Positions 7,901 through 60,131 are shown, counted from the first letter of the stretch. The stretch is DNA of 64,000 nucleotides from Macrostomum lignano (GCA_002269645.1 NIVC01000070.1:434001-498000); one strand, 5' to 3'. The notes: generated by a model not told the origin, from the sequence alone. A program made the numbers and translations.

Positions 7901-8620
7901 TTTTATATGGTGCCTCTTAAATATTAGACATGGTGGCTCGTTTAGGTTTGACATGGTGGCTCTTTAATATTCGATATGTTAGCTCTTTTATGTTCGACAT
8001 GGTGGCTCTTCTATGTTTGACATTGCGCTTCTTTTATGTTTAGAAGTTTTGTGTTTTTAAGGTGTTTTAATAAAAAAAATCTTTTTTGCCCTACTAAGAT
8101 TCGAACCCAAGTCGCTACATTAGCATTCCAGTCTGTTCGCATCTGGGCTATCTTTTTCAATTGGAGAACATAAATTGTGGCCCTTATAATTCAATTCTTA
8201 CAGCAAGTCAATTGGAGTAAAAAGTTATGACATAATCAATTTCTCAGTCAGCCAGAATCAGTCTCAATTTAAGTTGCCAATATGGTTACGCAATTTCATT
8301 CAAGTCGTGTGTGCATTTCTTCGGCACTGTTTTCAACTTGTTGTGATGCAATCTTTGTCAGAATCAGAATTCAGTCAGTCAGTTTTTTCTCTAGCATTCT
8401 TACAATGCATTTCAGGTCGAAAGAGCTGCTTGACCTTTGCAAAAAAGCATGTTTTTCGAATATTTAATCCCTTTAAAATTGAGCAATTTCTTAGCCAAGA
8501 TGCATGTACCGTCCCAGGAAAATTTCTGATCGAATGGTGCAAGTTTGAAGAAAATCGGTTAAGCCGTTTTTTCTGAAATCTATCTCACAGAGACACACAT
8601 TTCATTTTTAGTATATAGGA
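4983..8620 (-). mobile_element. Non-autonomous Helitron copy 2, with internal 23-bp (5640-8040) and 18-bp (5120-5550) arrays
   Basis: On the minus strand: A^TCCTATATACTA at 8621/8620, 3' hairpin CCCCC-AAC-GGGGG plus CTAG at 4983-4986. About 580 bp of 5' non-repetitive sequence is closely similar to copy 1. Confidence 0.85.
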
Positions 8621-9300
8621 TGTCTGTTGTTTTTCGAACATAAAAGAGCCACCATGTAGAATATTAAAGAGCAACCATGTCAAACATTTAAGAGCCACCA
8701 TATCAAACATTTAAGAGCCACCATGTCAAACATATAAGTGACTTTATGTCAAACATAGAAGTGACTTTATGTCAAACATTGAAGAGCCGCCATGTCAAAC
8801 ATAAAAGAGCCACCATGTCAAACAATAAAGAGCCACCATTTCGAACATAAAAGATGCACAATTTCAAACGTAAAAGTAAGCGAATTTTAAAGGAGCCACT
8901 ATAATGCTAAGGAATTGTCGCACTAGCTACATATTGTCTGGTGGATGCTTGCTTTTTGGGGATGCTATCTATCTGGGGGATGCTTGCTATCTGGAGGATG
9001 CTTGCTATCTGGGGGATGCTTGCTATCTGGGGGATGCTTACTATTTGGGGGATGCTTGCTATCTGGGGGATGCTTGCTATTTGGGGATGTTATCTATCTG
9101 GGGGATGCTTACTATTTGGGGGATGCTTGGTATCTGGGGGATGGGGGTCCAAGTCTTGGGATGATTTCTTTTTGCATTGCACTTCATTTGAGTATTTTGT
9201 CTGTTTTCTTTGTGAAGGCTTTATTTGGCTATCTTTTTGTTACTTGTAGAGAACAGAGATTCTATACAGATGTCCCCCAACGGGGGGCGAAGATTGCTAG
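8621..9300 (+). mobile_element. 3' part of a same-family Helitron (23-bp array 8630-8860, 18-bp array 8945-9140, 3' hairpin + CTAG^T)
   Basis: TGTCCCCCAACGGGGGGCGAAGATTGCTAG^T at 9271-9301; reverse-complement match to the 3' ends of copies 1 and 2. Confidence 0.85.
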
Positions 9301-9344
9301 TATAAAAATCTAAAAAGCACAGCCCTTTTATACACTAATCGCAG

Positions 9345-12300: not shown

Positions 12301-15300
12301 ACTGCACTCAATAAACCAAGGACTATTGCTCTTGGCAAACCAAGGATTACTGCACTCGATAAGCCAAGGACTATTGCTCTTGGCAAACCAAGGATTACTG
12401 CACTCGATAAGCCATGGATTATTGCTATTAATAAACCAAGGATTACTGCACTCGATAAGCCAAGGATTATTGCTATTAATAAACCAAGGATTACTGCACT
12501 CGATAAACCAAGGATTATTGCTATTAATAAACCAAGGATTATGCACTTGGCAAACCAAGGATTACTGCACTCGATAAGCCAAGGATTATTGCTATTAATA
12601 AACCAAGGATTACTGCACTCAATAAACCAAGGACTATTGCTCTTGGCAAACCAAGGATTACTGCACTTGATTAATCAAGGATTATTGCTATTAATAAACC
12701 AAGGATTACTGCACTCGATAAGCCAAGGATTATTGCTATTAATAAACCAAGGATTACTGCACTCGATAAGCCAAGGATTATTGCTATTAATAAACCAAGG
12801 ATTACTGCACTCGATAAGCCAAGGATTATTGCTATTAATAAACCAAGGATTACTGCACTCGATAAGCCAAGGATTATTGCTATTAATAAACCAAGGATTA
12901 CTGCACTCGATAAGGCATGGATTATTGCTATTAATAAACCAAGGATTACTGCACTCGATAAGCCAAGGATTATTGCTATTAATAAACCAAGGATTACTGC
13001 ACTCGATAAGCCAAGGATTATTGCTATTAATAAACCATGAATTACTGCACTCGATAAGCCAAGGAATATTGCTATTAATAAACCAAGGATTACTGCACTC
13101 ATAAGCCATGGATTATTGCTATTAATAAACCAAGGATTACTTACTGCACTTGGCAAACCAAGAATTACTGCACTCGATAAGCCATGGATTATTGCTATTA
13201 ATAAACCAAGGATTACTGCACTCGATAGCCAAGGACTATTGCTCTTGGCAAACCAAGGATTACTGCACTCGATAAGCCAAGGACTATTGCTCTTGGCAAA
13301 CCAAGGATTACTGCACTCGATAAGCCATGGATTATTGCTATTAATAAACCAAGGATTACTGCACTCGATAAGCCAAGGATTATTGCTATTAATAAACCAA
13401 GGATTACTGCACTCGATAAGCCAAGGATTATTGCTATTAATAAACCAAGGATTATGCACTTGGCAAACCAAGGATTACTGCACTCGATAAGCCAAGGATT
13501 ATTGCTATTAATAAACCAAGGATTACTGCACTCAATAAACCAAGGACTATTGCTCTTGGCAAACCAAGGATTACTGCACTTGATTAATCAAGGATTATTG
13601 CTATTAATAAACCAAGGATTACTGCACTCGATAAGCCAAGGATTATTGCTATTAATAAACCAAGGATTACTGCACTCGATAAGCCAAGGATTATTGCTAT
13701 TAATAAACCAAGGATTACTGCACTCGATAAGGCATGGATTATTGCTATTAATAAACCAAGGATTACTGCACTCGATAAGCCAAGGATTATTGCTATTAAT
13801 AAACCAAGGATTACTGCACTCGATAAGCCAAGGATTATTGCTATTAATAAACCATGAATTACTGCACTCGATAAGCCAAGGAATATTGCTATTAATAAAC
13901 CAAGGATTACTGCACTCATAAGCCATGGATTTTGGCTATTAATAAACCAAGGATTACTTACTGCACTTGGCAAACCAAGAATTACTGCACTCGATAAGCC
14001 ATGGATTATTGCTATTAATAAACCAAGGATTACTGCACTCGATAGCCAAGGATTACTGCGCTTGATAAGCTTGGCTACATGTATAGGATTATTTCTATCC
14101 AGGGATGCTTGCTATTTAGGGATTCTTGCTATGTGCAGGATGCTTGCTATCTGGAAGGATGCTTCTACATTATTTGGGGTATGCTTGCTATCTGCAAGAT
14201 GCTTGCTATCTGCAAGATGCTTGCTATCTGCAGATGCTTGCTATCTGCAGATGCTTGCTATCTGGGTGGATGCTTGGTAGGAGTATTAGGGGATGCTTGC
14301 TACTGGGGGGATGCTTGCTGTCTTGGGAATATTTTCTATTTAGGGGTAATGACTAAAATTCATGAGAGCTAGCCTAGAGGTAAACAGACTAAACTGCTAA
14401 ATGCAGGGACGATGGTTCGAATTTTTAGACAGTAGAGTTTTTTTAATTAAAGCTTTTTAACGCCAAGACAAAAAAAAATTATGGAAGCGTCATGTAAACA
14501 ATCATAGAAGCGTCATGTAAAAATCATAGAAGCGTCATGTAAAAATCATAGAAGCGTCATGTAAACAATCATAGAAGCGTCATGTAAACAATCATAGAAG
14601 CGTCATGTTAAAATCATAAAAGCGTCATGTAAACAATCATACAAGCGTCATGTAAACAATCATAGAAGCGTCGTGTAAAAAAATCATAGAAGCGTCATGT
14701 TAAAATCATAAAAGCGTCATAAAAAAATCATAGAAGCGTCATGCAAACAATCATAGAAGCGTCATGTTAAAATCATACAAGCGTCATGTAAACAATCATA
14801 CAAGCGTCATGTAAACAATCATAGAAGCGTCATGTAAAAAATCATAGAAGCGTCATGTTAAAATCATAAAAGCGTCATAAAAAATCATAGAAGCGTCATG
14901 TAAACAATCATACAAGCGTCATGTAAACAATCATAGAAGCGTCATGTAAAAATCATAGAAGCGTCATGTAAACAATAATAGAAGCGTCATGTAAAAATCA
15001 TAGAAGCGTCATGTAAACAATCATAGAAGCGTCATGTAAACAATCATAGAAGCGTCATGTAAACAATCATAGAAGCGTCATGTAAACAATCATAGAAGCG
15101 TCATGTAAAAAATCATAGAAGCGTCATGTAAAAATCATAGAAGCGTCATGTAAAAATCATAGAAGCGTCATGAAAAAATCATAGAAGCGTCATGTAAAAA
15201 TCATAGAAGCGTCATGTAAAAATCATAGAAGCGTCATGTAAAAAATCATAGAAGCGTCATGTAAACAATCATACAAGCGTCATGTAAACAATCATAGAAG

Positions 15301-25600: not shown

Positions 25601-28600
25601 GAAAAAATGCAAAATATACAATCGGTTTATAAGTATTCGTCTCTTAGATACAAAAGTATACTAGGACTAAGTATACTAGTAGGATAAAAGCATATCTGTT
25701 TTATTGCGTATGTTGCCAAATATTGCCAAATCTTGTCCTGTCTCTGGTTTACAATGAAAATTTGCCAGCCCACCCCCTCTAACACAGATCATCTCTGCTC
25801 AGCCAGAGGTGACAAGCCGTCTCGAGCTGACTGATGAGGGTCGCCAAGTTGCCGACCATGGCAGCCACGAGGCTGTGCTGTTTGCCAGCGTGCCAGCTGG
25901 CGATGGCGCACCGCAGAGCGAGCTGATGAAGTCTGTGCCCAATGCGAAAATCGGGTTTAGCAAGGTTTGTTTAACCCAAGTTTAACTTGGCTTTTTTAAC
26001 TACAGGATCAGATATAGAAATCTGATCAGATATAGGAGAGAGGAGAGGAGAAAGGTAAGGAGAGAGGAGAAAGGTAAGGAGAGAGGAGAGGAGAAAGGTA
26101 AGGAGAGAGGAGAAAGGTAAGGAGAGAGGAGAGGAAAAAGCTGAGAAGAGACAAACCTTTTGGCCCTCAAGCCGGATTTTGCCGAGCCCTGACTTGAATA
26201 TATCTACATCATTTATACTCGTACAGGCTACTTATAAATAGAACTTAGCACTATTTTGGGTTTTAAATAGCTCAGCTCTCTTTTAGACAGAGGATGCTGG
26301 CCATGACTTTGTATCCGAGGTGTCGTTCTCTATATAATAATTTTAAGTATTATTCTGAACCCTAAAAGTTTGAAACATTATCCCCTGGGCTTTGCCAGGC
26401 CCTGGCTAACAGATGGATCCGCCTAGACAAATCTGCTCAGGGTGGACCGCGAGTTTATCGCCAAGTTGAGTCCGTGTCCGACCGAATCCGTCACTGCCTA
26501 CAGATGGTTGCCGCTCTTAGCCTTGACAGCTTGACAGCCGAGGAGCGAGCCGAGCTCAAGAAGCGCAAACTGGTGCAGGAGGGCCGGGTTACAGTCTATA
26601 GGGTTGCTAAGTGAGCTGAGTACTGTTGCTGTTCGGGTTGCTATGGGACTGTTTGGTTTAGTTAGCCTGTAGACTGTAGTCTAGTCTGTATTGTGCTGTA
26701 GCCTAGTCTGTAGTTTGCTGTAGTCTAGGCTGTATTTTGATTTAGTCTAGGCTGTAGTTTGCTGTAGTCTAGCCTGTAGTGTGATGTAGTCTAGCCTGTA
26801 GTGTGATGTAGTCTAGCCTGTAGTGTGATGTAGTCTAGCCTGTAGCCTGCTGTAGTCTAGCCTGTAGCCTGCTGTAGTCTAGCCTGTAGCCTGCTGTAGT
26901 CTAGCCTGTAGTGTGATGTAGTCTAGCCTGTAGCCTGCTGTAGTCTAGCCTGTAGTCTGCTGTAGTCTAGCCTGTAGTGTGATGTAGTCTAGCCTGTAGC
27001 CTGCTGTAGTCTAGCCTGTAGTCTGCTGTAGTCTAGCCTGTAGTGTGATGTAGTCTAGCCTGTAGCCTGCTGTAGTCTAGCCTGTAGTCTGCTGTAGTCT
27101 AGCCTGTAGTGTGATGTAGTCTAGCCTGTAGCCTGCTGTAGTCTAGCCTGTAGCCTGCTGTAGTCTAGCCTGTAGTCTGCTGTAGTCTAGTCTGTAGTCT
27201 AGCCTGTAGTCTGCTGTAGTCTAGCCTGTAGCCTGCTGTAGTCTAGTCTGTAGTCTGCTGTAGTCTAGCCTGTAGTGTGATGTAGTCTGGCCTGTAGTCT
27301 GCTGTAGTCTAGCCTGTAGTGTGATGTAGTCTAGCCTGTAGTCTGCTGTAGTCTAGCCTGTAGCCTGCTGTAGTCTAGTCTGTAGTCTGCTGTAGTCTAG
27401 CCTGTAGTGTGATGTAGTCTAGTCTGTAGTCTAGCCTGTAGTGTGATGTAGTCTAGCCTGTAGTCTGCTGTAGTCTAGCCTGTAGTCTGCTGTAGTCTAG
27501 CCTGTAGTGTGATGTAGTCTAGCATGTACTGTAGACTTTTGGACTCCTTTACGGTCTGAAAGTTAAGGCTAACTGAAAAGGAATTGAAGATCGAAGATGA
27601 TAAATCGACCAACTCTGAGCAACACTACCGCCTCACCAAATCCGCCACACAGAGGCCCAGCCTTCACCCTAACCCTGGCCAAGGAGGAAACCGAACTCAC
27701 CGCCGAGATGCTGGCCACCGGCGTCTGGCAGACTCTGACATTCAAAGCGTACAATTTCAAAGCTCTGGGCCAGCAACCCGACTGCGGTCATCTGCATCCT
27801 CTGCTGAAGGTTCGCGCCGAATTCCGACAGATCTTCTTGGAGATGGGCTTCCAGGAGATGCCCACCAATCGGTACGTTGAGAGTAGCTTCTGGAATTTCG
27901 ACGCGTTGTTCCAGCCACAGCAGCATCCGGCTAGGGACGCTCACGACACCTTCTTCCTAACTGAGCCGGCCGCCTGTCGGCTGGATGCTGAGCAGGCCGA
28001 CGGCTACCTGGCCAGGGTCAAGGCTGTGCATAGCAACGGCGGCTACGGCTCGATTGGCTACAACTACGATTGGAAAGAGTCGGTGAGTGAGGGGGTGTTA
28101 GGAGGCTCGCAATTCCCTGATTTTCAACCTGGGATCCCCAATTTACCAATTTATGATCCTCAACCTGTGATCCCCAATTTTTGATCCTCAACCTGTGATC
28201 CCCGATTTATGATCCTCAACCTGTGATCCCGATTTATGATCCTCAACCTGTGATCCCAAATTTATGATCCTCAACCTGTGATCCCCAATTTATGATTCCT
28301 CAACCTATGATCACCAATTTATGATCCTCAGTTATGACCCCAATTTACGAGCTATTGTCCCCTATCTATGATTCCCTTATTTATAATCCCCTATCTGTGA
28401 TCTCCAGTATCTTATTAATTTGTAATCCACGATCCCACTAGTTGGTCTCCAAAACTCCTTTCCCCGACTCTCTGATTCCACAAGTCACTTTAACTTGAAT
28501 ACTCATGAGTACTCCTAAGGTGTAAAATATGTTGTAAGTGGCATGTTATAAGTTCAACTTTCTTCATCTTATATAATTTTCTATTTTCCAACTCCAGGAG

Positions 28601-29140
28601 GCCCAGAAGAACATACTCCGCACGCACACCACCGCAGTGAGCGCCCGGATGCTGTACCAGCTGGCCCAGCAGCCCCAGTTCCAGCCGACCAAGTACTTCA
28701 GCATCGATCGGGTGTTCCGCAACGAGTCACTGGACGCTACGCACCTGGCCGAGTTCCATCAAATTGAGGGCCTAGTAGCGGATTACAATTTGAATCTGTG
28801 CCATCTCATGGGCATTATTCGTGAATTCTTTCACAAGCTGGGGATTCGGCGCCTGCGATTCAAGCCGGCTTATAATCCCTACACTGAGCCTAGCATGGAG
28901 ATTTTCTCTTATCACGAGGGTCTGGGCAAGTGGGTTGAAATTGGCAATTCCGGCGTGTTCAGGCCCGAGATGCTATTGCCCATGGGCCTGCCGGAGTCTG
29001 TGTCCGTCATCGCCTGGGGCCTGTCGTTGGAGCGGCCAACTATGATCAAGTACGGTATTAATAACATCAGAGATCTGATCGGGCCGAAGGTCGATTTGAA
29101 GATGGTCAGTGTGGGACCGATCTGTCGGCTGGATAAATAA
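22691..29140 (+). CDS. FARSA: Phenylalanyl-tRNA synthetase alpha subunit, cytoplasmic; exons 22691-22828, 25788-25964, 26399-26610, 27653-28082, 28598-29140 (~499 aa)
   Basis: Motifs [82 protein letters not shown]. All four GT-AG introns are phase-consistent (0, 0, 2, 0). Confidence 0.97.
26036..26140 (+). repeat. Purine-rich GAGAGGAGAAAGGTAAG repeat in FARSA intron 2
   Basis: About four direct units. Confidence 0.85.
26665..27530 (+). repeat. Compound TGTAGTCTAGCC / TGTAG(T/C)CTGC / TGTAGTGTGA minisatellite filling FARSA intron 3
   Basis: 10- and 12-bp subunits alternating into ~22-bp dimers. Confidence 0.95.
28125..28400 (+). repeat. ~28-bp minisatellite (ATTTATGATCCTCAACCTGTGATCCCCA) in FARSA intron 4
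   Basis: Direct tandem units, decaying rightwards. Confidence 0.9.
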
Positions 29141-32664: not shown

Positions 32665-33183
32665 ATGCTCAAACCGATTCATGCCGAGATGCAGAAAGCA
32701 TTTACAATCTGCTGCGGCAGAACTGGCCACAGCCTGTTCAGCCAGCCTGTCCGTCACGGCCGCTACCTCATGCCCGGCTCGCTGCACCTGCCATTTCACC
32801 AGCGATTCGACGTCAACACCGGAGACCGATTGCCAAACCCGCACCCGGAGACTCCCCGCTACAAGTCCCTGTCGCCCAGCAGGCCGCCGGCCATCCAGAA
32901 GACCAAGCCGTTCCGTTTCGAAGCCAAGGCTGGCAAAACCTACTGGTGGTGCAGCTGCGGTCTGTCTCACACGCAGCCGCTCTGCGACGGGCATCACAAG
33001 CGGATTAATAAGCTGATTGACGCCGGTCACTACACTGTCAACTATCCGAATTACCGACCAGTTAAACTCTGCTTAGATGAGGACAAGGCCGTGTGGCTGT
33101 GCCAGTGCAAGCGGACTAAATCGCCACCTTATTGCGATGGCAGTCACAGAAATCCTGAGGTGCAACAGGTTAAAGAGGTCTGA
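32665..33183 (+). CDS. CISD3: CDGSH iron-sulfur domain protein with two 2Fe-2S motifs (CISD3/MiNT-like), single coding exon, 172 aa
   Basis: WWCSCGLSHTQPLCDGHH and WLCQCKRTKSPPYCDGSH; the N-terminal extension is compatible with mitochondrial targeting (inference). Confidence 0.88.
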   Translation: MLKPIHAEMQKAFTICCGRTGHSLFSQPVRHGRYLMPGSLHLPFHQRFDVNTGDRLPNPHPETPRYKSLSPSRPPAIQKTKPFRFEAKAGKTYWWCSCGLSHTQPLCDGHHKRINKLIDAGHYTVNYPNYRPVKLCLDEDKAVWLCQCKRTKSPPYCDGSHRNPEVQQVKEV

Positions 33184-41605: not shown

Positions 41606-44978
<3,373 letters not shown>

Positions 44979-46871: not shown

Positions 46872-47072
46872 TGTAGTGTGCGTACGCACGGTATGCTAGC
46901 CCAACGTGTACGTCCGGCAGGTCTGATTGGCTACAGAGCGGGGTGGGTACCGCCACCCCAATTATAGCTCTGCGCTCATAAATATATAGATGTGGGCCCA
47001 GCGCGGCGAGAGTGTAAGAGTTTCGTGAGTTTCGGCTACACAGCAAACACGGCCTCTGTCTCAGATACTACA
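46872..47072 (+). repeat. 5' LTR (201 bp)
   Basis: TGTAGTG...TACTACA; TATA-like ATAAATATATA at ~46978. Confidence 0.93.
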
Positions 47073-47103
47073 ATGGCGTCGCAAGAACCGAACCCTTAAA
47101 ATC

Positions 47104-50100
47104 ATGACTCAGCAAATCACACTCACGCCACCCGACCCGTTTACAATCAATAGCGATTGCCACTCCACTGCACAGCGCTGGGCTGCATGGATTCGTCGCT
47201 TCGCCACGTACATCATTGCAGCTGGAATCACCGACAAGATTCGAGGGCAGCAGCTGCTGCTGTACGCCGCAGGAGAGGAGCTGCAGGCTGTTGTCGAAGA
47301 GAACGAGATTGTCTCTGGAGAGGACCACAACAGCCTCGCGAAAAACATCCAGACGTACTGGGATGGAAAGAATAACATTGTGTTCCTGCGTTTCAAGTTT
47401 GAGACCTGCAGACAGCAGCCTGGCGAGCCGATCGACCAGTGGTATCAGCGTCTGCGCAAGGCGGCGGAGCCGTGTGAGTTTGGGACCCTCAGAGACTCTC
47501 TGATCCGAGACAAAATAGTCGCCTACTGCGAGTCCGAGAGACTTAGGAGAGACTTCTTGTAGACCAACAACATCTCCCTGGCGGATGTGCTCAAAAAGGC
47601 GAGGGCGAAAGAAATCGCGAAGCAGCAGGCCACCGCGATGGAGAGCGACAGACCAGGAGAACCGCAGCAGACCGCAGCAGTCAGAAAAGACTGGCAGCCG
47701 CCAAGACCGCAGGCACCGACGCAGCGCGTATCCTGCGATCGCTGCAGCAGATCGGGGCACCCCATGTGCACCGCAGCGCAGGGCAAGAGCTGCAGAAAGT
47801 GCGGGAAGCCGGACCACTTCGCACAACCCTGCAGGTCCAGGCAGCACGCCCCGCAGAGCGGCGCCAACGCCGTCGCAACGCTGCAAGGCGAGACCAGCTA
47901 CCAGAAGGTGGACGACCCGGACTCCGGCGTGTTCGAGGTCGACCAGGGAGAGCAGTCGGCCCACACAGTAGCCGAGATCAACGGCTCCAGACTCTCTGTG
48001 TTGATTGACAGCGGCGCGGCTCGAAATGTGATCAACCGGGCCACGTTCGAGAGTCAGAGACAGCGGCCGCACCTGCAGACCACCTCGGACAGGCTGTTCG
48101 CGTACGGGTCAGACCGGCCGATGCATCTGCTGGGCAAGGCGGCGATGGCCGCTCGCATTTTCGGCCGGCAGGCAGTCGCCACGTTCCACGTTGTAGAACA
48201 TCACCCTCATCGGCAGGCAGACAGCCACCCAGATGGACATCCTGCGTGTCGGACCACCTCCGACTGCCGGCCAGCAGGTGCTGCAGGTCGCTGAAGCGGA
48301 GGCGGCGGTCGACACCCTCCTCAGCGGCACGAGATCCAGGGGAGTACCTCAAGAACACGTAGAGGACATCGGCGGGGTGCTGCGCAAGTATGCCAGCGTG
48401 TTCAGCGGCGTCGGCTGCTTCACCGGGCCGCCTGTCGACATCCACCTCACCGACAGCGCCCGCCCGGTCTGCCACGCACCTTTGAAGGTGCCGATCCACC
48501 TGGCAGGCGCGGTGGACAAGGAACTGCAGCTTCTAGAGCAGCTCGGGATCATTCGGGTCCAGCGCCGTGGGTTGCTCGGATGGTCGTCGTGCCCAAGAAA
48601 GAGCTTGGCGAGGTGCGCATCACACAGGACCTCCGCGATGTAAACCGCTACGTCATCCGCGAGCGGCACCAGATTCCGACTTTCGAGGAGGTGACCGGGG
48701 ACATGGCCGGCAGCACCGTGTTCTCGGAGCTGGACATCGCGAAGGCGTTCTACCAGGTGCCTGTGGCCGAGAAATGCCGCAAGCTGCTAACATTCTCGAC
48801 GCCTCGCGGACTTCGCCGTCTCACCCGGCTGTGCATGGGCCTGTCCACCTCCCAGGAGATCCTGCAGAATGTGATGAGTCGAGTGCTGGCAGGCCTGCCC
48901 AACGTCAAATGGATCCACGACGACGTGGTCGTGTTCGACTGCACGATGGCGGAGCACAACAGCAGCCTCGAGGCATGTCTGGCCCGCCTGGCGTAGCACG
49001 GCATCACGCTGAACGCTCGGAGGTGCCGACTGGCGCGCAGCAGCATCGAGTTCATGGGATTGCGGCTCACGGCGGAAGGAGTCCAGGCCAGCGAAAGCAA
49101 GGTCGCCGCCGTTCAAGACTTCAAGGAGCCCGAGACGATTTGACAGCTTCGCTCATTCCTAGGCCTCGTAAACTACCTCGCCGTGTTCACGCCACAGCTA
49201 GCCAAGGTGGTGGAACCGCTGCGGCGTCTGACCAGGAAGGGCGTCGACTGGCAGTAGGGCGCCGACCAAGCCAGCACCTTTGAGCAGCTGAAGCGCAGCA
49301 TCGCGGAGCCGAAAACGCTGGCTTTCTACGACAAGCGGCTGTGCATGCAGCTGATCGTGGACGCGGGGCCGACCGGACTGGGCGCCATCCTGGCGCAGGT
49401 ACAGCGCGACGGCAGCTCGAGGCCGGTCGTATACGCCAGCCGAGCCCTATCCGACGTCGAGCGGCGATACTGGCACTGGCCGTGAAGTTCGGCTGCCTGA
49501 AGTTCGAGTACTACCTGCATGAATCGCCCAAGTTCACAGTGGTCTCCGATCACAAGCCGCTGACGGCCATGTTCGCGCCTGGGTCGCGGCCGCCTCCACG
49601 AGTCGAGCGAATGATGCTGAGGATCCAGCACCTAAGGTCGAGTACCAGCCGGGAGCCTCCAATGCTGCAGACGTACTCAGCAGGCAACCCATAAGCGCGC
49701 ATGGCGGAAGTTTTGGCGACAAGCGGAGGGAGGCCTACATCAACGAGGTGACGCAGGCGGCTGTGCCGATGGCGCTGACACTCGAGGACAACCGCAAGAG
49801 CTCTGCCAGCGACCCAGTCATCCGGGTGGCGATAGCGGCGACTCAAGGCGACCGGTGGGATTGCTCCAACGCCGAGATACGTTCGCTCCATGCGCTGCGA
49901 GAGGAGCTGTCTGCGGTGACGGGGTCCTCCTTCGGCACCAGCGAATCGTCGTGCCAGCTGATCTGCGGCAGCAGATGCTCGAACTGGCGCACCAAGGGCA
50001 CCAGTGCTCGCAGACGACGATCGCGAGGCTCGCCACCAAGGTCTGGTGGCCGAGGATGGCAACTCAAGCGGAGGAGTTCGTCAGTCGATGCCGCAGCTGC

Positions 50101-50900
50101 GCCGTCACGTCACACACACCAGCCGTCAGGGCCACGCCTTAGCAGCCGACGCCGATCCCCGCGGGCGCCTGGCTGTCGATCGGCGCCGACTTCGTGGGAC
50201 CCATCAACAACAACATGCTGCTGGTGTGCGTGGACCGCTACTCGAGGTTCCCGGAGGTGCAGCTCATGCAGACGACGACGACTGAGGCACTGATTCCCCG
50301 CCTACGAGAGATGTTCGCTCGCTTCGGGATCCCGCAGGAGCTCGTGACAGACAATGGACCGCCCTTCTCGTCCAAGGAGCTCGGCCGGTTCTTGGCGAGC
50401 TACGGGATCAAGCACCGCCTCATCACGCCCTACTACCCAGCGGCCAACGGCATGACGGAGCGGCTGAACCGCTCCATCAACAAATTCGTACTCGCAGCCA
50501 ACGAGGAGCGGCGGGACTGGAGAGCTGCTCTGGATGAGTGGCTGCTGGCCTACAGGAACACGCCGCACACGGCTACCGGGCGCGCACCAGCCGAGCTGCT
50601 GATGGGCCGGCGGCCAAACGACGTCATTCCCACCGCCCGGCCGTCCCAGCGGGTCCGCATCAATGAGCAGCGGCTGAGAGACGCGGACGCCGGCGCTAAA
50701 GAGGCCATGAAGCAGCACGCGGACGTAAAAAGGCGACCACGGCGGCACGGCGTCCAGGTCGACGACACGGTGCTACGACGGCGGGTCGGTGCCAGCAAGA
50801 CGCAGACGCCGTTCGAAAGCGGTGCCTGGACGGTCCAGCGGCATCTCGCTGCTGCTACGCCGCGATGGCTCAACCTGCTGGCGGCACTGAACGGCGGTCA
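47104..50900 (+). pseudogene. gag-pol pseudogene of the Gypsy element
   Basis: Gag with CX2CX4HX4C knuckle (CRKCGKPDHFAQPC); protease LIDSGA (~48000); RT WIHDDVVVF (~48910); RNase H DAGPTGLGAIL; integrase HHCC plus DFVGP / TDNGPPF / NGMTERLNR. In-frame stops (e.g. 47560, 48994, 49141, 49255) and several frameshifts. Confidence 0.92.
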
Positions 50901-51426
50901 AGGTCGTCAGCCCCGACTTGGCCGACGCCGTCGCCCATCCGCAAACCGCTGCACCGAGAGCTCCAGGCGAGGCCAACCGAGACCCACCCGCCTCCCCGGT
51001 GGCACTGCGCCCGCACCCCCGCGATGCTCGGGGCGGCTTGAAAATCTACAAGGACTGAATTTTGAATCCAGTGACTGACATAAACTGACTCTTTCCTGAA
51101 ATATGCGGACTAAAGTTTTTTTAAGCATTGTCGCTGCTGAAATCGATTCAAGTATTTTATTTCCTCAATGTGGCAGCCAGCCGCTTTAGTTTCTTATTCA
51201 TGCATAAATTATTGTCTATGGACAAACTCAAATATACTTGTAAAGGGTGTGTGGCTGCGCCCACAGTCTCCCCAAGCGCGAATACTCCCAATACATTCAA
51301 ACACGCAACACTCAATATTTTAAAATCCGTTTTCAATGCGCATGATCGCAGTTTCGAGTTTTGTATTTTCGAGTTACGTTTAAATCGATTTTTTTGTCTC
51401 GCAGTCTCTATTCGAAGGGGGAGAGA

Positions 51427-51601: not shown

Positions 51602-53290
51602 GATGGTTCGGCTATAATTACTCCCGTACATGTAGCTATCAATTCATAAGCGAGTACATACCTGTACGTATTAATTTTCGAGCTTTCGATGTGTACAAAA
51701 AATACAAATACGCAATTGTGGGGTATAACGGTCTCGTCGCCGAATTAGCGGCAAAATGCTTCACCGCCGAGAATAAATCAGCAGAGAAAATTTTTGGCGA
51801 AACTTGACTAGATGGAGTTACAGCCGTACATTTGCGTGTTACGTTCAGGAATTTGAACACGTAGTATACACTTTTCATCTTATTTAAGTAAGATTCAGAG
51901 CCTTAGAATGAGTTTTTTCAAGCATTGACTGTGAAAATTACAACTGTGAATCTGTTTGCAAAGATCTTATAGACACTTCTTTTTTGCGTCACGGAACAAA
52001 TGTGTAATTTATTTACATTTTCGAGAGAAATATAAGAAATTATTATGTATGACTAAAAGTTTGTACTGTCGTTTAATTTGTTTATAAAAGACAGCAAAGT
52101 TAACTTCACTTTAATCTTAATACCAGTAATTTTTGTCACTTGTTATAACTGGTTAACACGAAACCGTAGGTTTTTTAATTCGCTGAAGTTTTTTTCCGTT
52201 TCTATAGTATCAGTATGCTAAGCGCGGATTCAAATAAAATTACATCAAGGAAGGATCTGCCAGTCAAATCCTCAGTTCCAAAGATCTGTCGGACATCACG
52301 AATAATTAGGATTATAAAATTTATATGCTATAAAAAGCTATAAGTGCAGTCTGTATTAGATTTATATTTGTGCTAGTGTAATGGTAGGTTACAGTACGAT
52401 GTTTGTGAAATATCATTACGAACAAATATTCTAGCTTTACGCATCTGATTTTATGGACAGTATCCACAGTTGTAATATGCATGTAGTAGGATGGTGATTT
52501 AGCATATAGCAGCACTAAAAACTTGTATTTATATGTATTTCCGCAATAAAAACTGTTACTAATAAATGTGATAATTATTTCACTAGTGGTATAAGCCTTT
52601 AAAAATATAATATTCTGCTTTGTCTGCCTTTTAAGCTATTTATTCAAAGTGAACATGTTAGCTAAATAAACTTATGTATATTTTTACAAATATTTTAGTT
52701 CCAAAGTCAACGCTTAATATTTTCAGTTCATTTTTCATTTTTCTAATTATCATTTATATCATATGATAAAAGTACTTTGGCAGTTGTTTGCAACTTAAGC
52801 AATATAAATGCTTCTACATGGTCTGATTTATTAATGATATTATAATATATTTAGTTATTTAGTGTCTTGCATAACTATTCACTTTTTGTTAATTAATTCC
52901 CTTTAATTTAGTTTCAATGCTACTGCTCCAATTCAAGCATTTAGACATTTAAAAACTCATAATAGGATTTCTGATTAGAATTCTATCAACTCTCTTATCA
53001 AACATCTACGTGCGATCGTGACGTTGTGAGCAGATCACTTTGCATCTATCAACCTTTGCCATGCTTATCCAATGGCTCTTCACTGCCCTTCGTCTCGACA
53101 ATTGTAGTAATTTTCCAAATTTTTCTTGGGGTTATTTTTTGACTTTCCACCTTTTTTACCTGTTAGCCATTGTGTTAGGGAATTAGTTTTGCGCGCCACA
53201 ATCTTGTGGGTGCCGTCTTTTCCGAATCTAGATTTGATAATGCGCTTTGCTAAAAAAAGGACTTTAACCACTATTTTTAATTTTTTTAGC

Positions 53291-53795
53291 ATGAGTAACA
53301 CTAAGTGCTACACTTACGTAGCAAAGCGCAGCCATCCAGCTTCTGAAGATGGCGAAGTCCGAAGTTTGCGTCCAGGAGACCTTGTTGTATCCACAGAGTT
53401 GCCTAAGTTTGACACAGAATATATCAAAGGTCGCAATGAGTCGACGCTTGAGACGGGCTTGTTCTCGAGCAACTGTCTCGAGCGATGCATCCGAGCTCGC
53501 TTGCTCCGTAACTTCAAACAGTTGAGAGCTGGCGCTGAAGCGCTCATTACTGATCTGAGCTTGCAACATCCGGGTTGCTCGTTCTACTGCAATGGAAATA
53601 GATACACACAACCAATTGAAATGTTTTACTTTGAGCGCGATGATGATTTGGCCGTTGTGATTGGCTCATACTCTCCCACAAATGATGACGAGCTTACCCT
53701 TACTGTGGGACAGATTGTATGGATGGATACTTTACAGGCATACCGACAATGCAGATTCTTGTCACTGGTGGGTTGGCGAGGTCGATGGTCAACGG
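53291..53795 (+). CDS. Exon encoding tandem SH3 domains (two clear, one possibly degenerate between them); 3' boundary uncertain (53767, 53780 or 53795)
   Basis: YVAKRSHPASEDGEVRSLRPGDLVV...YIKGRNESTLETGLFSSNCLE and AVVIGSYSPTNDDELTLTVGQIV...GWRGR follow the SH3 pattern. Acceptor TTTTTTTAG lies 1 nt before the ATG. Confidence 0.7.
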
Positions 53796-54300
53796 GCAAG
53801 TTACTTTTGTAGCGACTACGTTTGGCCATTAAAAAAGGTAAATCATACACATTTTGGCAACTGTTACTTATAGCATCAACAGTAGCATTGTATTACAGGG
53901 TCTTGCAGGACAACCCTGATACAAAGCCTTCGTTGGCATATCGTCACACTGCAGCTGGTGAGGCAATGGTCTCATTGTGGCAACTGCCCGCCTAATTGTT
54001 GCAGTCCCTTAGAGCTTTCAAATGCCAATAAATTAAACTTGACTGCCTTAGAATTTGAACAATCTATCCCGATATTTTGAGATATAGTATCCTACTACTA
54101 AATTCAATGCATGGTTGAAGATTACAGCTATTTAGCTGGGGCGCCCAGACGAGCAGCTCAAATAATTGAAGTTGTGATTGCACCCAAAGTCTAGTTTTGT
54201 TTCATGGCAAAAACGTTTTTAGCAATAATAAGCATGCATTGTAAAAACTCATAAAATCAAGAAATGCTTTTAGAAGACTCGAAACAACTTTCAATTGCAG

Positions 54301-54812
54301 GTCATGACTGTATTGTCTGAACACGTAATCCAAGGCGATTTCGAAAGAGTTCGCCAACTAGCTAGCAGGGAGCTGATGATGATGCATGGTGATCAAGGCC
54401 GCAACGTATTGATGCTAGCAGCCGAATCAAAAAACAGCAGCCCAGGGACCGCTAAGTGTATACATTATCTAGTACACCTAGGATGCTGCACGTATTCCAT
54501 AGATGCAAAGGGGAACACAGCAGCACATCTCGCAGCCCAAAACGACAACCTTCGATTTCTCACCGCGCTGACTCACGTAACCGCTGTGCCATTTGACTGG
54601 AAGTGGCAGCAAAATGACCAGGGACGCACGCCTCTAATGGAAGCCGCAAGGCTGGGCAACTGGAAGTGCGCGAAGCATCTGCTGCACCTGTTTCGGCAGC
54701 AAAGGTACTATAAAATGAAAGGTTTTGTTGCAAATAATGATCGAAACGGTTTAACTGCGTTCGATATTGCAAAGGAAAACGGGAATGAGGAAATTGGAAA
54801 TCTAATAGAAAT
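54301..54812 (+). CDS. Ankyrin-repeat exon, block 1
   Basis: GRNVLMLAA, DAKGNTAAHLAA, NDQGRTPLMEAARLG, DRNGLTAFDIA; acceptor TTGCAG at 54300, donor GTAAGT at 54813. Confidence 0.85.
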
Positions 54813-55132
54813 GTAAGTTACGAGTAATTATTTTTCAATAGTCTAGCAAATATTAAAGCGATTGAGAGAGTCTTAGAACTGCTTCATACGATTTCATTCC
54901 AGTGAATGGCAAGCAACTGTGTCTTGGGCGAGGAACTGCCCGCTTACTAAAACCGTTTGCATAAGCAATGAATTGGTGAATCTCTTAACTTCTGCTCTAA
55001 CTATATAGGATTTTTTCATTGTGCAATGGTTGGTGCATTTAGCCTGAAACAGACAAAAAATACGTAAATAAATAGATAACATAGATAAAAAGAATAAATT
55101 AAAATTCAAGTTTGAGTCTTCAAACTCTACGA

Positions 55133-55632
55133 AATGGCGTACGCACAGCGAAGTCCATGGTGGGGAGGCCCCTCCCCCAAGTGGCTCCTCCAATCACTCT
55201 ACAAAAAGTTATACTTCTCCAAAAACTAATTTAAAAAGTAACCGACCTCGACCAATGACAGGAGCTTAACTTTTGCCATCTTTTGAGCATTGCAGCAACT
55301 GGCCTAAGAGACAGGAATAGTGGGCGCCCACCAAGAGACAGGGGCGCCCACCAAGAGACAGTGGTACCCACCAAAAGAGATCGTGGCACCCACTAAAAGA
55401 GAGCTTAAAAGAGAGCTTTGGCGCTTACCAAAAGAGAGAAGGGTACACACCAAGAGACAGTGGTACCCACCAAGAGACAGTGGTACCCACCAAGAGACAG
55501 TGGTACCCACCAAGAGACAGTGGTACCCACCAAGAGACAGTGGTACCCATCAAGAGACAGTGGCACCCACCAAAAGAGAGAGGAGTGCCCACCAAGAGAC
55601 ATTGGCACCCACCAAAAGTTTCTACGCCACTT
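55133..55632. mobile_element. MITE-like element (TGGCGTA...TACGCCA termini) enclosing a 20-bp array (GGTACCCACCAAGAGACAGT, 55317-55615)
   Basis: Imperfect terminal inverted repeats flank the array; no TSD identified. Confidence 0.45.
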
Positions 55633-55741
55633 TCCAAAAGCATTCATTGCCCAGTTTTTTTCATAGTTTAGCTAAAAAGACTCTATTTTGGACCATTTAT
55701 TAATGCTATGTTTGCAATACATAACTCATATGAAACCATAG

Positions 55742-56226
55742 GGAGAAGTTCGAAACCAGCTTATGCGGTTTTTCCAATCCAACAACGTATCGGCACTGCA
55801 ACAAAAATTGACGATTGGCAACTGCGACTTACCAGATATACACGGGAGGACGATTCTGTGGCAGTGCGTCCAGGACAACCAGAGCAATGAATCCCTACTG
55901 CGCCTTCTGATGAGCAAAGCTGACCCAACTTGTGCCGACGTAGCTGGCAGCAGCTGCTTGCATGCGGCGGTGCGTAAAGGCAACGAAGAAGTCATAAAAG
56001 CGCTCATTGACGCAGGAGTAAACGTGAACGAGCGAACTGAAGACGGCGTTACCGCTTTAATGCGCGTGGCAACCAGCTCAGAACTCTCGGACAGCGAGTC
56101 AGTAACAATTGCTGATCTGCTTCTGGATGCAGGTGCGGACTGGACGATTGAGAGCAATAGCAGCTCTACGGCCCTGAAATTCGCTGTTGAGCACGGAAAG
56201 AACAGTCTTGTCAAGCTTCTTTCGCA
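55742..56226 (+). CDS. Ankyrin-repeat exon, block 2
   Basis: DIHGRTILWQCV, DVAGSSCLHAAVRKGNEEVIKALIDAGVNVN, EDGVTALMRVA, SSTALKFAVEHG; donor GTGAGA at 56227 (phase 2). Confidence 0.85.
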
Positions 56227-56783
56227 GTGAGAATTATTTTTGCGAATCAAAAATTATTCATTAAAGCTTCGTTGCTTGATTACAGCAAGTACTAAAGTAA
56301 GCACTAAAGTGGCACTAAAGTAAAACTAGATCATTTGAAGTCGGCCAACATCTAAACATACGTTTTGGAGGGTACCATTAGCAAAAATTTGTTAATAGGT
56401 TAACTTAGGACTAGGCTGTACAATTTATGACTTTAAAGCACTTTAAATGATCTGAATTGTTAATTAAAATCTTAGGACTTTTTGAAGATATTAAGTATTA
56501 TGTTTTGTTTTCGAAAATCGATGCACTTTCTTCTTACTCTTAACTTTGTGCATTATTTTCCTCCATTTTAGATATGAAGGGAGATCGTATTTCGAAGTGG
56601 CTGGGTAAGGCTCGAAACTAGCTAGCTACTGTAGTTGCTTGCTTTTTCTATAGCTACTTTATTGTTTTCTTGAATCGTACGAGCGTACGGCACGGAAAAC
56701 CCGTGAAGGTCATTTACCGATTTAAAACTTACTGGTATTAGGCTGAGAAATACGCGGTGACTGTACCGGCCACCAAACGTTGT

Positions 56784-57015
56784 CACAGACAGTCCCATAG
56801 ACCATCCTTGCCACAGACATTCCCGTAGACCATCCTTGCCACAGACATTCCCGTAGACCATCCTTGCCACAGACATTCCCGTAGACCATCCTTGCCACAG
56901 ACATTCCCGTAGACCATCCTTGCCACAGACATTCCCGTAGACCATCCTTGCCACAGACATTCCCGTAGACCATCCGTGTCACAGACATTCCCATACAAAA
57001 TCCTTGCCACAGGCA
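56784..57015 (+). repeat. 28-bp minisatellite (CACAGACATTCCCGTAGACCATCCTTGC), intronic
   Basis: About 8 direct units. Confidence 0.95.
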
Positions 57016-57287
57016 GTCACCTGCATAAAAACAAATATCAAACAGTACCATAGACTATAATTGCTACAGAGAACTAGTACAGAAACCACTTTTTAACAAA
57101 GTCTGAATAATTCACACTCTGAATGTTGCTTTTGAATTACAACATTCGAGAAAGAAACCCAACTGGAAGAACCAATGATTCACGATCAGCGCAAACGTTG
57201 TTATTCATATAGTCAAACCGTTACTAAAGTAAAATTTCCGGCATTTATTATATTAAACAAACATGCTTCTACAACACAATATTTTAG

Positions 57288-58754
57288 AGCAAGTCAAGCA
57301 AGACACTCTTTAACAAGCATCGTTACTGCCTCAGCTCCAGCCAAAGCCCTTGAGTACTCAATGGTGCAACTCCAGAAGACGCAGCCTCCAAAAAGACATC
57401 TTGAAGGGTCCATGAAGGAAGATATTCTGCGAAAGTCTGAATCCTCTGAAGCTACTAGTTTAAAATATGAGACGGAAAAAATAAAGAAGCGCATTCATCC
57501 TCAAGGTCCTTCACACCGCCCGAAAGCGATTTTGGAAGAAAACACAGATTTTTCGGGTTTAAGACAATTAGAAGAATCAGGAAATGAACGACAACTGCTT
57601 CCTTCACACAGTGCAGTTCACACTGAAGAATTAGATGAAGAATCTCGTGACATTGGTGCGCCGACTTCTGCTGACACTGAAGGATCAGACAGAGAATTTT
57701 GTGATATTGGTGCACCGACCTCAGCTCACACTGAAGAAGCAGACAAAGACTCTCTCACTAATCGTCCAGTGTCGTCAATTAATCCGAAGAAAAAACAAGA
57801 GCAATGCTTTATCACTACTCCGCTTATCCGTGCAGCATCTTCAATTCACCCTGAAAGAGTAGAAGGAGAATCCAATTTTGCTTTAACGCTGCAACAAATT
57901 CGTTCGGAAAGAGAAAAAAGGGCAAGCAGAATTGATGAGTCCGATCTAGAGTCGGAACAAGAAACGAGTACTCCTAAACGACAGCAATCTATTTCCGCTG
58001 AGGAAATCGAGCGCTTGTTCGATGCGGAAGAGCCGGACAAAGTTCTGAATGAGAAGTGGAGCCGGGGCACTAACGAGACTCCTCTCATGCTATTGGCAAA
58101 AAGCGATGCAGACCCCGAACTGGCTGTTAAATTATTGAAAGCTGGCGCCTCAATTCGGGCTAAAAATTCACTTGGACAGACGCCGATTTGCATGGCCAGC
58201 ACTCAAGGGAACAATAAGTTACTTAAAATTTTTACAAACAAGTCACATATAAAGCATCTTAACGTGGTCGAAGAAGTCAACAAGCCAGACAACTCTCTTT
58301 CGACGCCTCTGATGCACGCGGCCGCGAATAACCATCCAGATACGGTGAAGTTGCTGCATAGCATGGGAGCCGATGTAAAGAAAGTGGTAAGAACTTATTG
58401 ATGCTTACATAACTATGATTTAAGTTGCGTCCAGGCCCATCTCGCCTATTGCGTCCTCGCCTCAAATTACTAATAGGACCGGTGCAAGCTTACCGCCCTA
58501 GCGCACGCCGCCAAGCGGGGGTCGCAAAACTGTGTGGCCATTCTGATCGATATCGGAGCCGAGGCAAACACCAAAGACTTCTGCGACAACACGCCTCTAA
58601 TTTGGGCCGCTAGGGGAAATTACCTGGAAGTGATCAAGGAATTGAGTCGAGTTCCGGAGCTTGAGTGGACTCATCGAGGGGAGTACAAGATGACAGCGTT
58701 GGAATGGGCCAAGTTCAATAAATTTCAGGACTGCTGCGATCTCATCCAACAGAG
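57288..58754 (+). CDS. Acidic linker plus ankyrin-repeat block 3; exons 57288-58386 and 58477-58754
   Basis: Phase-2 acceptor at 57287 matches the donor at 56227; the phase-0 junction 58386/58477 gives KKV|DRCKLTALAHAAKRG. Repeats NETPLMLLAK, GQTPICMAS, LSTPLMHAAANNH, DNTPLIWAARG. Confidence 0.85.
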
Positions 58755-59333
58755 GTAAATGCAACAATTCTTCCAGGAAACTTAACTTGCGTCACGGATA
58801 TTTTAGATCTGTAATTTTTAGGAGCGTAGGCTACAAGAGTCCATTAAGTCGAGCCATGTAATTATTCGAGTCGATTTACGCAGAAAGAAGATCGAACTTA
58901 AGTGATTTTTGTCATAAGGACATTCGAAAATTTTCATAAATGAGGTCAGTATTACCTAACTAGCTCATACTATTAGGAACTTCTTTCAGCTTCACGCTTT
59001 GTACAACCCGCTTTTTAAGCATGTAAGCCCCTGGCAAAGACCAGTTATTTGAACAGTAGCGTCTCTACGCTAGTAGTGGACAATGTGATACAATTTAGCT
59101 AGCCACTGTCATCAATAAACGTAAGCCCCCGAACCCATTTACGTGACCGCTCGTAATAAAAGATTTCAGAGCAATAAGCTAGTAGAGTTGCTCACGAATT
59201 TGAAAATTAATCCTAATTAATTTTAGAGCATAAATGCAAAAAACATTTATTTTAGTATGCCAAAAAGTTACCAAAGCGACGCTAGAACATTGGCTACAAG
59301 TGCCAGAGGAAGCACTGCTGAGGCTGGAGATGA

Positions 59334-60131
59334 GAACGGGCTCCGTGGAGCGAAGCTACTGCGGCGGCTGCTCCTTCCGTCGTTCCTCCATCGCTACCGC
59401 CAACAGCACCGCCAATGCCGCTGCCTCCCAATCGATACTCCATGGACAGACCCACAAGAGGCATTGCAATTATAATAAACAATGTTAACTTCAACACTGC
59501 GAGTCTACCTCGAAGGCATGGAGCAATGAACGATAGCCACGAGACGGGGCTGACACAGGCGTTCGAGAGGTTGGGACTGGAAGTAGAAATTCACTGCAAC
59601 CTGACAAGTCACTTCTTTACGCACTACCTGCCCGCTATAAACAGGCCTGTGACACAATACCAGCAGCATGATGTTTTTGTATTGTGCGTCATGAGCCACG
59701 GCCATAACGGCTGCATATTCAGTACAGACGGCCACAGAATCGAACTGGAGTCTTTGTTCAGCCAGGTGCGCGAGTGTCCCGGCCTCCGTGGCAAGCCGAA
59801 GATTTTTATTGTCCAAGCTTGCCGAGTAGTGGATGGGCCTGTGGCGCCGCGAACTCGGGTGCAATGTCTGGAAGACTGCCTGTACATCTACAGCACTTCC
59901 GAGGGTCTGGGGTCGGAGCGAAGTGGTTCAACTGGCGGCATTTTCACTAACATATTCCGTGACGTCATCATGGCGGCCGACCTGCGGTCCGAAGACTTCA
60001 ACAACCACCTGTTGCTGCAAGTTGCTAATCAAGTTAATCAAGCAACAGGGGGCCGACAGGTAGTCGAATGGGTAGTTACTCTGCAGAAGCATCTCTACTT
60101 TCCCCCAATTAGAGTTCAAAACAGAAATTAA
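59334..60131 (+). CDS. Caspase (peptidase C14A) domain, p20+p10 in one exon, preceded by a Pro-rich linker; frame open from 59334, first ATG 59415
   Basis: RGIAIIINNVNF, RRHGA, FVLCVMSHG (His codon 59697), GKPKIFIVQACR (Cys codon 59820), DCLYIYST, GGIFTNIF, LQKHLYFPP. Confidence 0.92.
   Translation, partial: ERAPWSEATAAAAPSVVPPSLPPTAPPMPLPPNRYSMDRPTRGIAIIINNVNFNTASLPRRHGAMNDSHETGLTQAFERLGLEVEIHCNLTSHFFTHYLPAINRPVTQYQQHDVFVLCVMSHGHNGCIFSTDGHRIELESLFSQVRECPGLRGKPKIFIVQACRVVDGPVAPRTRVQCLEDCLYIYSTSEGLGSERSGSTGGIFTNIFRDVIMAADLRSEDFNNHLLLQVANQVNQATGGRQVVEWVVTLQKHLYFPPIRVQNRN

Follow-up and report, generated by a model that had tools for sequence, protein, structure and literature searches.

The 64,000-nucleotide stretch of Macrostomum lignano DNA analyzed here (GCA_002269645.1 NIVC01000070.1:434001-498000; hereafter the window) carries, on the plus strand at 53291-60131, a gene made up of six open stretches that encode an SH3-like head, ankyrin (ANK) repeats, a linker, a Pro-rich stretch and a caspase. 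This gene is probably a recently disabled duplicate of a long-prodomain ANK-caspase gene with an SH3-like head of ~180 amino acids (aa), lying in a genome with extensive recent duplication. As assembled, and judged from its sequence, the copy cannot encode the full fusion, owing to two frame breaks and to a phase mismatch between ankyrin blocks 1 and 2. The original prediction for this locus had described a single protein of ~1,280 aa, or a co-expressed cluster, serving as a protease-activation platform; its observations were confirmed in part, and its interpretation found partial support, while its idea of ligand sensing by the ankyrin repeats or SH3s is speculative.

Gene layout in the window and in a paralogue

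The caspase exon has its closest match in a separate, diverged M. lignano protein, P0001 (BOX15_Mlig004809g2; 356 aa, ANK and Peptidase_C14 domains), to which it is 53-56% identical, so the window carries a paralogue of a second gene. We refer to the gene in the window as paralogue B and to the second gene as paralogue A, the latter represented by P0001, by the protein P0005 (UniProt A0A1I8G2I6) and by the genomic locus of P0001 (L001; NIVC01000713.1). P0005, an M. lignano protein of 856 aa that turned up in a HMMER search with the caspase domain, is a single predicted open reading frame (ORF) in which the head, ANK1, ANK2, ANK3, ANK4 and the caspase follow one another. It is collinear with the gene in the window at 37-63% identity per block; the head exon is 44-50% identical to the P0005 head, and exon 3 is 43% identical to P0005 residues 295-443. 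At L001, the order on one strand is the same as in the window: head (836-1147), ANK1 (1416-1908), ANK3 (9157-9396), ANK4 (9965-10240) and caspase (10865-11638). Identity between the two loci is 48% for ANK1 (L001 1564-1908), 45% for ANK3 (L001 9157-9396) and 55% for ANK4, the last both to L001 9965-10240 and to P0001.

L001 is itself decayed (1-1040 and 1908-9157). A fragment of a retroelement integrase adjoins the head at ~836, and the first ~35 codons are gone. In addition, ANK1 carries a frameshift when compared with P0005, and there is no ANK2 exon; the ORF spanning ANK4 and the caspase (P0001) is still annotated from transcripts.

Splice sites were compared between the two loci. The head/ANK1 intron is phase 0 in both, with AAG/GTAAAT...ttgcag/GTC in the window (53837>54301) and GAG/GTAAGA...ttgcag/GCC at L001. 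The ANK1 donor is phase 2 in both (AT/GTAAGT in the window and TT/GTAGGT at L001), and so is the ANK4/caspase intron, which yields a Ser codon in each case (AG/GTAAAT...ttttag/T in the window and AG/GTAAAG...tccag/C at L001). Two junctions proposed originally, 56226>57288 (phase 2) and 58386>58477 (phase 0), proved canonical and phase-consistent; the former reads ...LLSQ/ASQ..., and P0005 reads ...VAV/ASS... at the same point. Two other proposals were rejected. The route from the SH3 region to ANK1 via 53899-53957 gave way to the conserved path 53837>54301, which needs a frame correction. The micro-exon at 58822-58857 is phase-neutral, and nothing corresponds to it in the paralogue, which joins ANK4 straight to the caspase exon.

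At the level of the family, the assignment of the SH3-like, ANK and caspase exons to one gene holds on these sequence comparisons. The single protein first proposed thus stands as a gene layout (P0005 and L001), but the ~1,280-aa ORF of the window copy is interrupted by the two breaks and the phase mismatch.

We also considered that the locus yields at least two products, a short adaptor with SH3-like and ANK modules plus an ANK-caspase or caspase-only protein, for example via spliced-leader trans-splicing of a polycistron. Two UniProt models of M. lignano, P0160 (266 aa) and P0161 (287 aa), match exon 1 over their own first 122 residues (99% and 98% identity), and both join 56226 to an acceptor at 57770. 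That junction is out of frame and stops at once, so that the models end in ...LLSHVVN*, as a short adaptor would; the transcript-derived P0001, for its part, begins within ANK4, although its locus is damaged upstream by the retroelement fragment, the loss of ANK2 and the frameshift. Spliced-leader trans-splicing is common in M. lignano. About 7% of its transcripts are polycistronic trans-splicing precursors (PMC5730564), and ATGs directly follow the acceptors at 53290 and 59256; the second of them, ATG 59257, however, opens an out-of-frame ORF of 72 aa. Exon phases and order, moreover, are kept between the paralogues as they would be in one ORF, and P0005 and three further M. lignano proteins, P0003 (PAA89054.1), P0014 (PAA93319.1) and P0019 (PAA59752.1), are single ORFs that run through ANK into the caspase. 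Because the 'BOX15' proteins of the Mlig_3_7 assembly are TransDecoder ORFs of genome-guided transcripts (PMC5730564), the presence of ANK and caspase in one ORF is transcript-supported for P0001, P0003, P0014 and P0019. Separate products from this locus therefore appear quite improbable to us.

The two ATGs (53291 and the out-of-frame 59257) lie 1-2 nucleotides (nt) after strong tttt(t)ag acceptors (53281-53293 and 59246-59259), a placement that would suit spliced-leader trans-splicing.

Domains encoded by the six exons

Exon 1 (53291..53837, plus strand) encodes the N-terminal head. Its ATG at 53291 follows a tttttttag acceptor, and it ends at the phase-0 donor shared with L001. On the plus strand, the head comprises a first SH3-like module (module 1, ~53303-53488), a conserved Cys-containing segment (~53489-53638) and a second SH3-like module (module 3, ~53639-53837). 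In a Pfam scan, raw exon 1 gave SH3_9 alone, as a 19-residue fragment scoring 21 bits (cut-off 30), because the last module is divided between two frames. When frame 2 (...TLTVGQIVWMDTLQAYR) was joined to frame 0 (...CHWWVGEVDGQRASYFCSDYVWPLKK) by a 1-nt correction, the SH3_9 match rose to 27.9 bits (E = 2e-6), still under the cut-off of 30. The corrected module 3 also matched SH3_1 and SH3_2, both under their curated cut-offs. Thus, no SH3 profile match above the Pfam curated threshold was found in the head, whether raw or frame-corrected, and the Pfam scan of the P0005 head returned no SH3 match.

Profile comparisons reached further. A search of PDB sequences with the head profile gave ~60 matches. 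Nearly all were SH3 domains that fell on positions 119-172, the best at E = 0.005, and module 1 drew two weak SH3 matches. We then used hhalign against nine canonical SH3 domains, whose sequences were entered by hand. Module 3 scored 96.9% (P = 1.7e-10, 56 columns) and module 1 scored 88% (P = 3e-6); the Cys-containing middle segment did not match this reference. Module 3 displays SH3 similarity at the profile level over the whole domain, with an ALYDY-like start, a WW pair and a G-x-(F/Y)-(P)-x-x-Y end. Structure prediction was uninformative because just 2-3 homologues exist: AlphaFold2 models built from alignments of 2-3 sequences had a mean predicted local distance difference test (pLDDT) score of 35 for the whole head and 47 for module 3, and Foldseek searches of PDB with these low-confidence models gave meaningless matches (best E = 2). 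The tandem SH3 domains first proposed are therefore retained as two SH3-like modules by profile comparison, but they stay under the Pfam cut-off. A head of two divergent SH3-like modules that are invisible to standard annotation is credible but unproven.

Searches with the head returned M. lignano proteins only, and no collected protein beyond paralogues A and B and the models P0160 and P0161 carried an SH3-like head. We also considered the head as the frameshifted tail of a retroviral integrase, an idea raised by the integrase fragment that adjoins it at L001. This was rejected because the integrase homology stops where the conserved head starts and because the window has no integrase there.

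The four ankyrin blocks, all on the plus strand, were each recognized by Pfam Ank_2, in agreement with the earlier description of ankyrin blocks. Exon 2 (54301..54812) encodes ANK1 (E = 1.3e-18, open stretch 54295-54816), between the phase-0 acceptor ttgcag/GTC and the phase-2 donor AT/GTAAGT. Exon 3 (55742..56226) encodes ANK2 (E = 3.5e-28, open stretch 55763-56230). Its phase-0 acceptor, which is also used by model P0161, lies directly after a TAG, and its donor is CA/GTGAG (phase 2). Exon 4 (57288..58386), which runs from acceptor ttttag/A (phase 2) to donor GTG/GTAAGA (phase 0), encodes a serine-rich and acidic linker followed by ANK3 (~58084-58380; E = 6e-13, C-terminal part of open stretch 57175-58401). 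The linker is ~270 aa long in the window copy, whereas it is very short in the P0005 model. Exon 5 (58477..58754) encodes ANK4 (E = 9e-7, open stretch 58534-58758), with a phase-0 acceptor and the phase-2 donor AG/GTAAAT. Also present, as had been described, are the acidic linker and, at 59385-59429, the Pro-rich stretch.

Several tandem repeats were found by Tandem Repeats Finder within the gene. In the acidic linker (57614-57754), a coding unit of 54 nt (18 aa), HTEE(L/A)D(E/K)ESRDIGAPTSA, recurs in ~2.6 copies. Two minisatellites without strand assignment are intronic, one with a 20-nt unit in ~14 copies (55327..55615) and one with a 28-nt unit in ~8 copies (56780..57012). The former is open in all three frames and so mimics coding sequence, and it has no similarity to the paralogous locus L001. 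The tandem-repeat ORFs at 55.3-55.7 kb were accordingly rejected as coding sequence.

Exon 6 (59256..60131, plus strand) begins at a strong acceptor, tttattttag/T, which forms the same Ser junction codon as in the paralogue and opens onto a linker in frame 1. Upstream of the protease lies the Pro-rich stretch (59385-59429, plus strand), which includes PLPPNR, a PxxPxR motif that is loosely conserved in paralogue A as LPALLPNDR. The caspase domain itself is in frame 0 on the plus strand (59457-60098; stop at 60129-60131). It matches the full Peptidase_C14 profile (PF00656, positions 1-233) at 108.7 bits (cut-off 21.4; E = 4.8e-31, open stretch 59415-60131), and at 104 bits within the conceptual full-length protein of 1,263 aa. 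The motifs reported originally are intact: SHG lies at 59694-59702, with the catalytic His at 59697-59699, and QACR lies at 59814-59825, with the catalytic Cys at 59820-59822. The residue after QACR is V in the window copy and L in the paralogue (QACRL). By its motifs, the caspase domain looks catalytically competent. Its identity to P0003 and P0004, two related M. lignano caspases, is 39.7% and 35.3%, compared with 41.4% and 36.5% for P0001; by this measure, there is no rate acceleration of the window caspase relative to its paralogue. When the conceptual protein of 1,263 aa was scanned with Pfam, no CARD or DED was found, as had been proposed; the only matches were to ANK families, Peptidase_C14 and, weakly, SH3_9.

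Frame breaks, the state of the copy and its surroundings

The first frame break lies inside the second SH3-like module (53723..53759, plus strand), where the reading frame passes from frame 2 to frame 0 through one extra base or two missing ones. The similarity to paralogue A lies in frame 2 as far as GQIVW (53720-53722; ...TLTVGQIVW) and in frame 0 from CHWW (53760 on; CHWWVGEVDGQRASYFCSDYVWPLKK), and the module is in a single frame in both L001 and P0005. Only frame 0 reaches the conserved donor at 53837, so that it is accessible only after frame correction. P0160 and P0161, both of which are ML2 models built on an independent assembly, leave exon 1 just upstream of the break, after ...DDDLAV, which is the expected behavior of a gene predictor at a broken ORF.

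The second break (59290..59348, plus strand) lies in exon 6. From the acceptor at 59256, the window reads S-MPKSYQSDARTLATS... and the paralogue S-INSLQTDARAQEAA. Homology continues in frame 1 (SYQSDARTLATS; paralogue SLQTDARAQEAA) and then resumes in frame 0 at SEATAAAAP...PNRY. The proposed junction 58754>59256 is thus consistent in phase, but the frame that it opens, frame 1, ends in a stop at 59473-59475, whereas the caspase is in frame 0, a frame closed upstream by a TGA at 59331-59333. The sole in-frame alternative is an acceptor at 59351, which has no polypyrimidine tract. Neither break falls in a long homopolymer.

The phase mismatch between ANK1 and ANK2, which had been pointed out previously, is real: ANK1 ends in phase 2, and the only usable ANK2 acceptor (55742) is phase 0. 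A search for an ANK2 acceptor of compatible phase, for an ANK1 donor in phase 0 and for a bridging exon gave no convincing candidate. A tblastx comparison of the ANK1-ANK2 intron with L001 revealed nothing conserved. The P0005 model omits the conserved tail of ANK1 and thereby keeps its frame.

The copy has been either recently disabled or mis-assembled, and of these, recent disabling is appreciably the more probable. Duplicated sequence makes up 180-312 Mb of the M. lignano assembly (PMC5730564), and redundant gene copies are therefore expected.

A rather unlikely account, though one that merits weighing, is that the gene is intact and functional and encodes an SH3-like/ANK/caspase protein of ~1,260 aa, the breaks being assembly indels or bypassed by splicing and a small exon bridging ANK1 and ANK2. 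Splicing at 59351 would restore the frame at the second break, but the acceptor at 59256 is strong and homologous to that of the paralogue, and 59351 lacks a polypyrimidine tract, as noted above; at the first break, two independent ML2 models splice round the lesion. Assembly error would be consistent with L001, which comes from the PacBio-based Mlig_3_7 assembly and is likewise frameshifted relative to P0005. However, both breaks are outside long homopolymers, and Mlig_3_7 had undergone polishing with both Illumina and RNA-seq data (PMC5730564). As an internal assembly control, the neighboring gene for the phenylalanyl-tRNA synthetase alpha subunit (PheRS-alpha; 27597-29140, plus strand) is frame-clean: its two core exons are joined at 28094/GT...AG/28598 in phase 0 with no frameshift. 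The preserved catalytic motifs fit an intact gene, as does a caspase about as similar to P0003 as P0001 is (39.7% vs 41.4%); yet the caspase of this copy occurs in no annotated protein. In the collections searched, no annotated protein carried its linker, ANK3 or ANK4 either, and queries with these three returned generic ankyrin proteins only. Neither the caspase ORF nor P0160 had an exact-sequence record in the assembly collections consulted.

No in-frame stop occurs over the ~1,260 codons of the six exons, including an open stretch of 421 codons; like the preserved catalytic motifs and the unaccelerated caspase, this speaks against old damage and for a recent loss, and it would also suit an intact gene. 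Several points weigh against our preferred reading of a recently disabled duplicate. The two frame breaks may be indels introduced in assembly, or they may be specific to one haplotype. The ANK1/ANK2 mismatch is seemingly present in the paralogue as well, since the P0005 model also drops the ANK1 tail, and it may reflect a shared, unrecognized small exon rather than damage. P0005, which carries the whole fusion, is a computational model. The SH3 assignment is under the Pfam threshold, and the structure models are of low confidence (pLDDT 35 and 47). Finally, the activation mechanism proposed below is wholly inferred. Because its reading frame is interrupted, support from transcripts and reads is needed before the copy is annotated as a protein of 1,280 aa.

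The window is eukaryotic and repeat-rich, with no tRNAs found in it, and other animal genes and a long terminal repeat (LTR) retroelement lie near the gene. The LTR-type retroelement (47068-51078) has a GC content of up to 64% and encodes, in several interrupted frames, a gag-like zinc knuckle, a protease, RVT_1 and an rve integrase; between its end and the downstream ATG of the gene lie ~2 kb. In addition to PheRS-alpha, the plus strand carries exons of an amiloride-sensitive (DEG/ENaC) channel (9359-10474), a CDGSH iron-sulfur protein (32665-33183) and a Spec3 ectodermal-ciliogenesis-family protein (43699-44226). Large minisatellite arrays at 1100-2050, 5100-5560, 8945-9310 and 11700-13970, with several open frames on each strand, yield many spurious long ORFs, such as those with GDACYL and NQGLLHSI repeats.

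ANK caspases and known systems

The architecture was described in the original prediction as unrecognized, but ANK caspases are a published class of platyhelminth proteins. The earliest mention is from Schistosoma (Lee et al. 2014), and the class forms a maximally supported clade in Krasovec et al. 2024 (PMC11463336), where it is reported as confined to parasitic flatworms. In that study, M. lignano has only a caspase bearing a 'protein kinase pro-domain', sister to the ANK-caspase clade. We assign the gene in the window to the ANK caspases provisionally, the class being given by domain layout and the link to the parasite clade being indirect, through the sister kinase-ANK-caspase (PMC11463336). 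No parasite ANK caspase was among the best 150 of 3,909 matches in the HMMER search with the caspase domain. Like the published proteins, this gene, in its exon layout, places a caspase after an ankyrin pro-domain without CARD or DED in a flatworm lineage, and a similar initiator-like role through ANK contacts has been proposed for that class. It differs in coming from a free-living macrostomid, in having more ANK (four blocks), and in its long acidic linker and an SH3-like head, a feature unmentioned in PMC11463336. The ANK caspases of free-living M. lignano contradict the published statement that the class is restricted to parasites.

Compared with the gene in the window, paralogue A has the same order of modules and, where they can be compared, the same intron positions and phases, with exon-by-exon identities of 44-56%. 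It differs in keeping the second SH3-like module in one frame, in joining ANK4 to the caspase directly and in frame, and in the shorter linker of its model. The next-closest caspase domains are those of the kinase-ANK-caspases P0003 and P0004 (35-40% identity, E = 1e-44 to 1e-50). These proteins also have ANK directly before the active caspase, with a similar layout of the ANK-to-caspase linker, but their head consists of a protein kinase and a degenerate caspase-like domain (QTHRD for QACRG) rather than SH3-like modules. The published 'kinase pro-domain caspase' thus combines an active caspase and ankyrin repeats with a protein kinase and a degenerate caspase-like domain, four parts in all.

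A further head type was seen in three other M. lignano ANK caspases, P0014, P0019 and P0158 (PAA80948.1). When scanned alone, the head segment of these proteins matches Pfam Mab-21_C at 26-27 bits (cut-off 24.1), and a GS...EG...DxD nucleotidyltransferase-like motif can be recognized by eye. A search of PDB sequences with the P0019 head gave no match. These features suggest a fusion of a cGAS/Mab21-like head with ANK and caspase.

The ANK caspases of M. lignano might, on a broader view that we think has little chance of being right, be a modular family whose members share an ANK and caspase effector and differ in swappable heads (SH3-like, kinase plus pseudo-caspase, or Mab21/cGAS-like). Such a family would act as a lineage-specific cell-death or innate-immunity system linking a sensor or adaptor directly to a protease without death-fold adaptors, and the gene in the window, or an intact allele of it, would work through SH3-PxxP oligomerization. 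What we report is modestly new: the ANK-caspase core of the architecture is already known, and the additions are the SH3-like head and the finding that a free-living flatworm has ANK caspases whose heads vary. The literature searched contained no mention of a protein with SH3, ANK and caspase domains.

SH3 and ankyrin domains also meet in adaptors such as ASPP/iASPP, SHANK, CASKIN and OSTF1, where, as may be the case here, both serve as protein-protein interaction modules. Unlike the gene in the window, these adaptors carry no protease; the order and number of domains differ, and no sequence relationship to them was detected in the searches with the head.

To our knowledge, flatworms have lost FADD and parasitic flatworms have also lost the DED caspases, for which ANK caspases are the proposed replacement; we know of no one who has established how ANK caspases are activated. 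M. lignano is genetically tractable and amenable to RNA interference and transgenesis, and because these methods work there, it offers a system for the study of caspase recruitment without CARD or DED.

The CARD/DED initiator caspases (caspase-2, -8 and -9, Dronc and CED-3) differ from the gene in the window in that the latter has no detectable death fold and carries the pentapeptide QACRV, compared with QACxG. Both place a long interaction pro-domain before a p20/p10 protease with a His-Cys dyad. With its long pro-domain built of protein-interaction modules, the encoded protein may act as an initiator-like caspase, gathering partners or further copies of itself through ANK and SH3 contacts that would replace the CARD/DED death folds. 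The protein's own SH3-like module has a candidate ligand in PLPPNR, just upstream of the protease; contact in cis would lead to autoinhibition, and contact in trans would lead to head-to-tail oligomerization. Induced proximity, as in the CARD/DED initiator caspases, is the natural working model, with activation predicted to take place on a partner that the ANK or SH3-like modules would bind.

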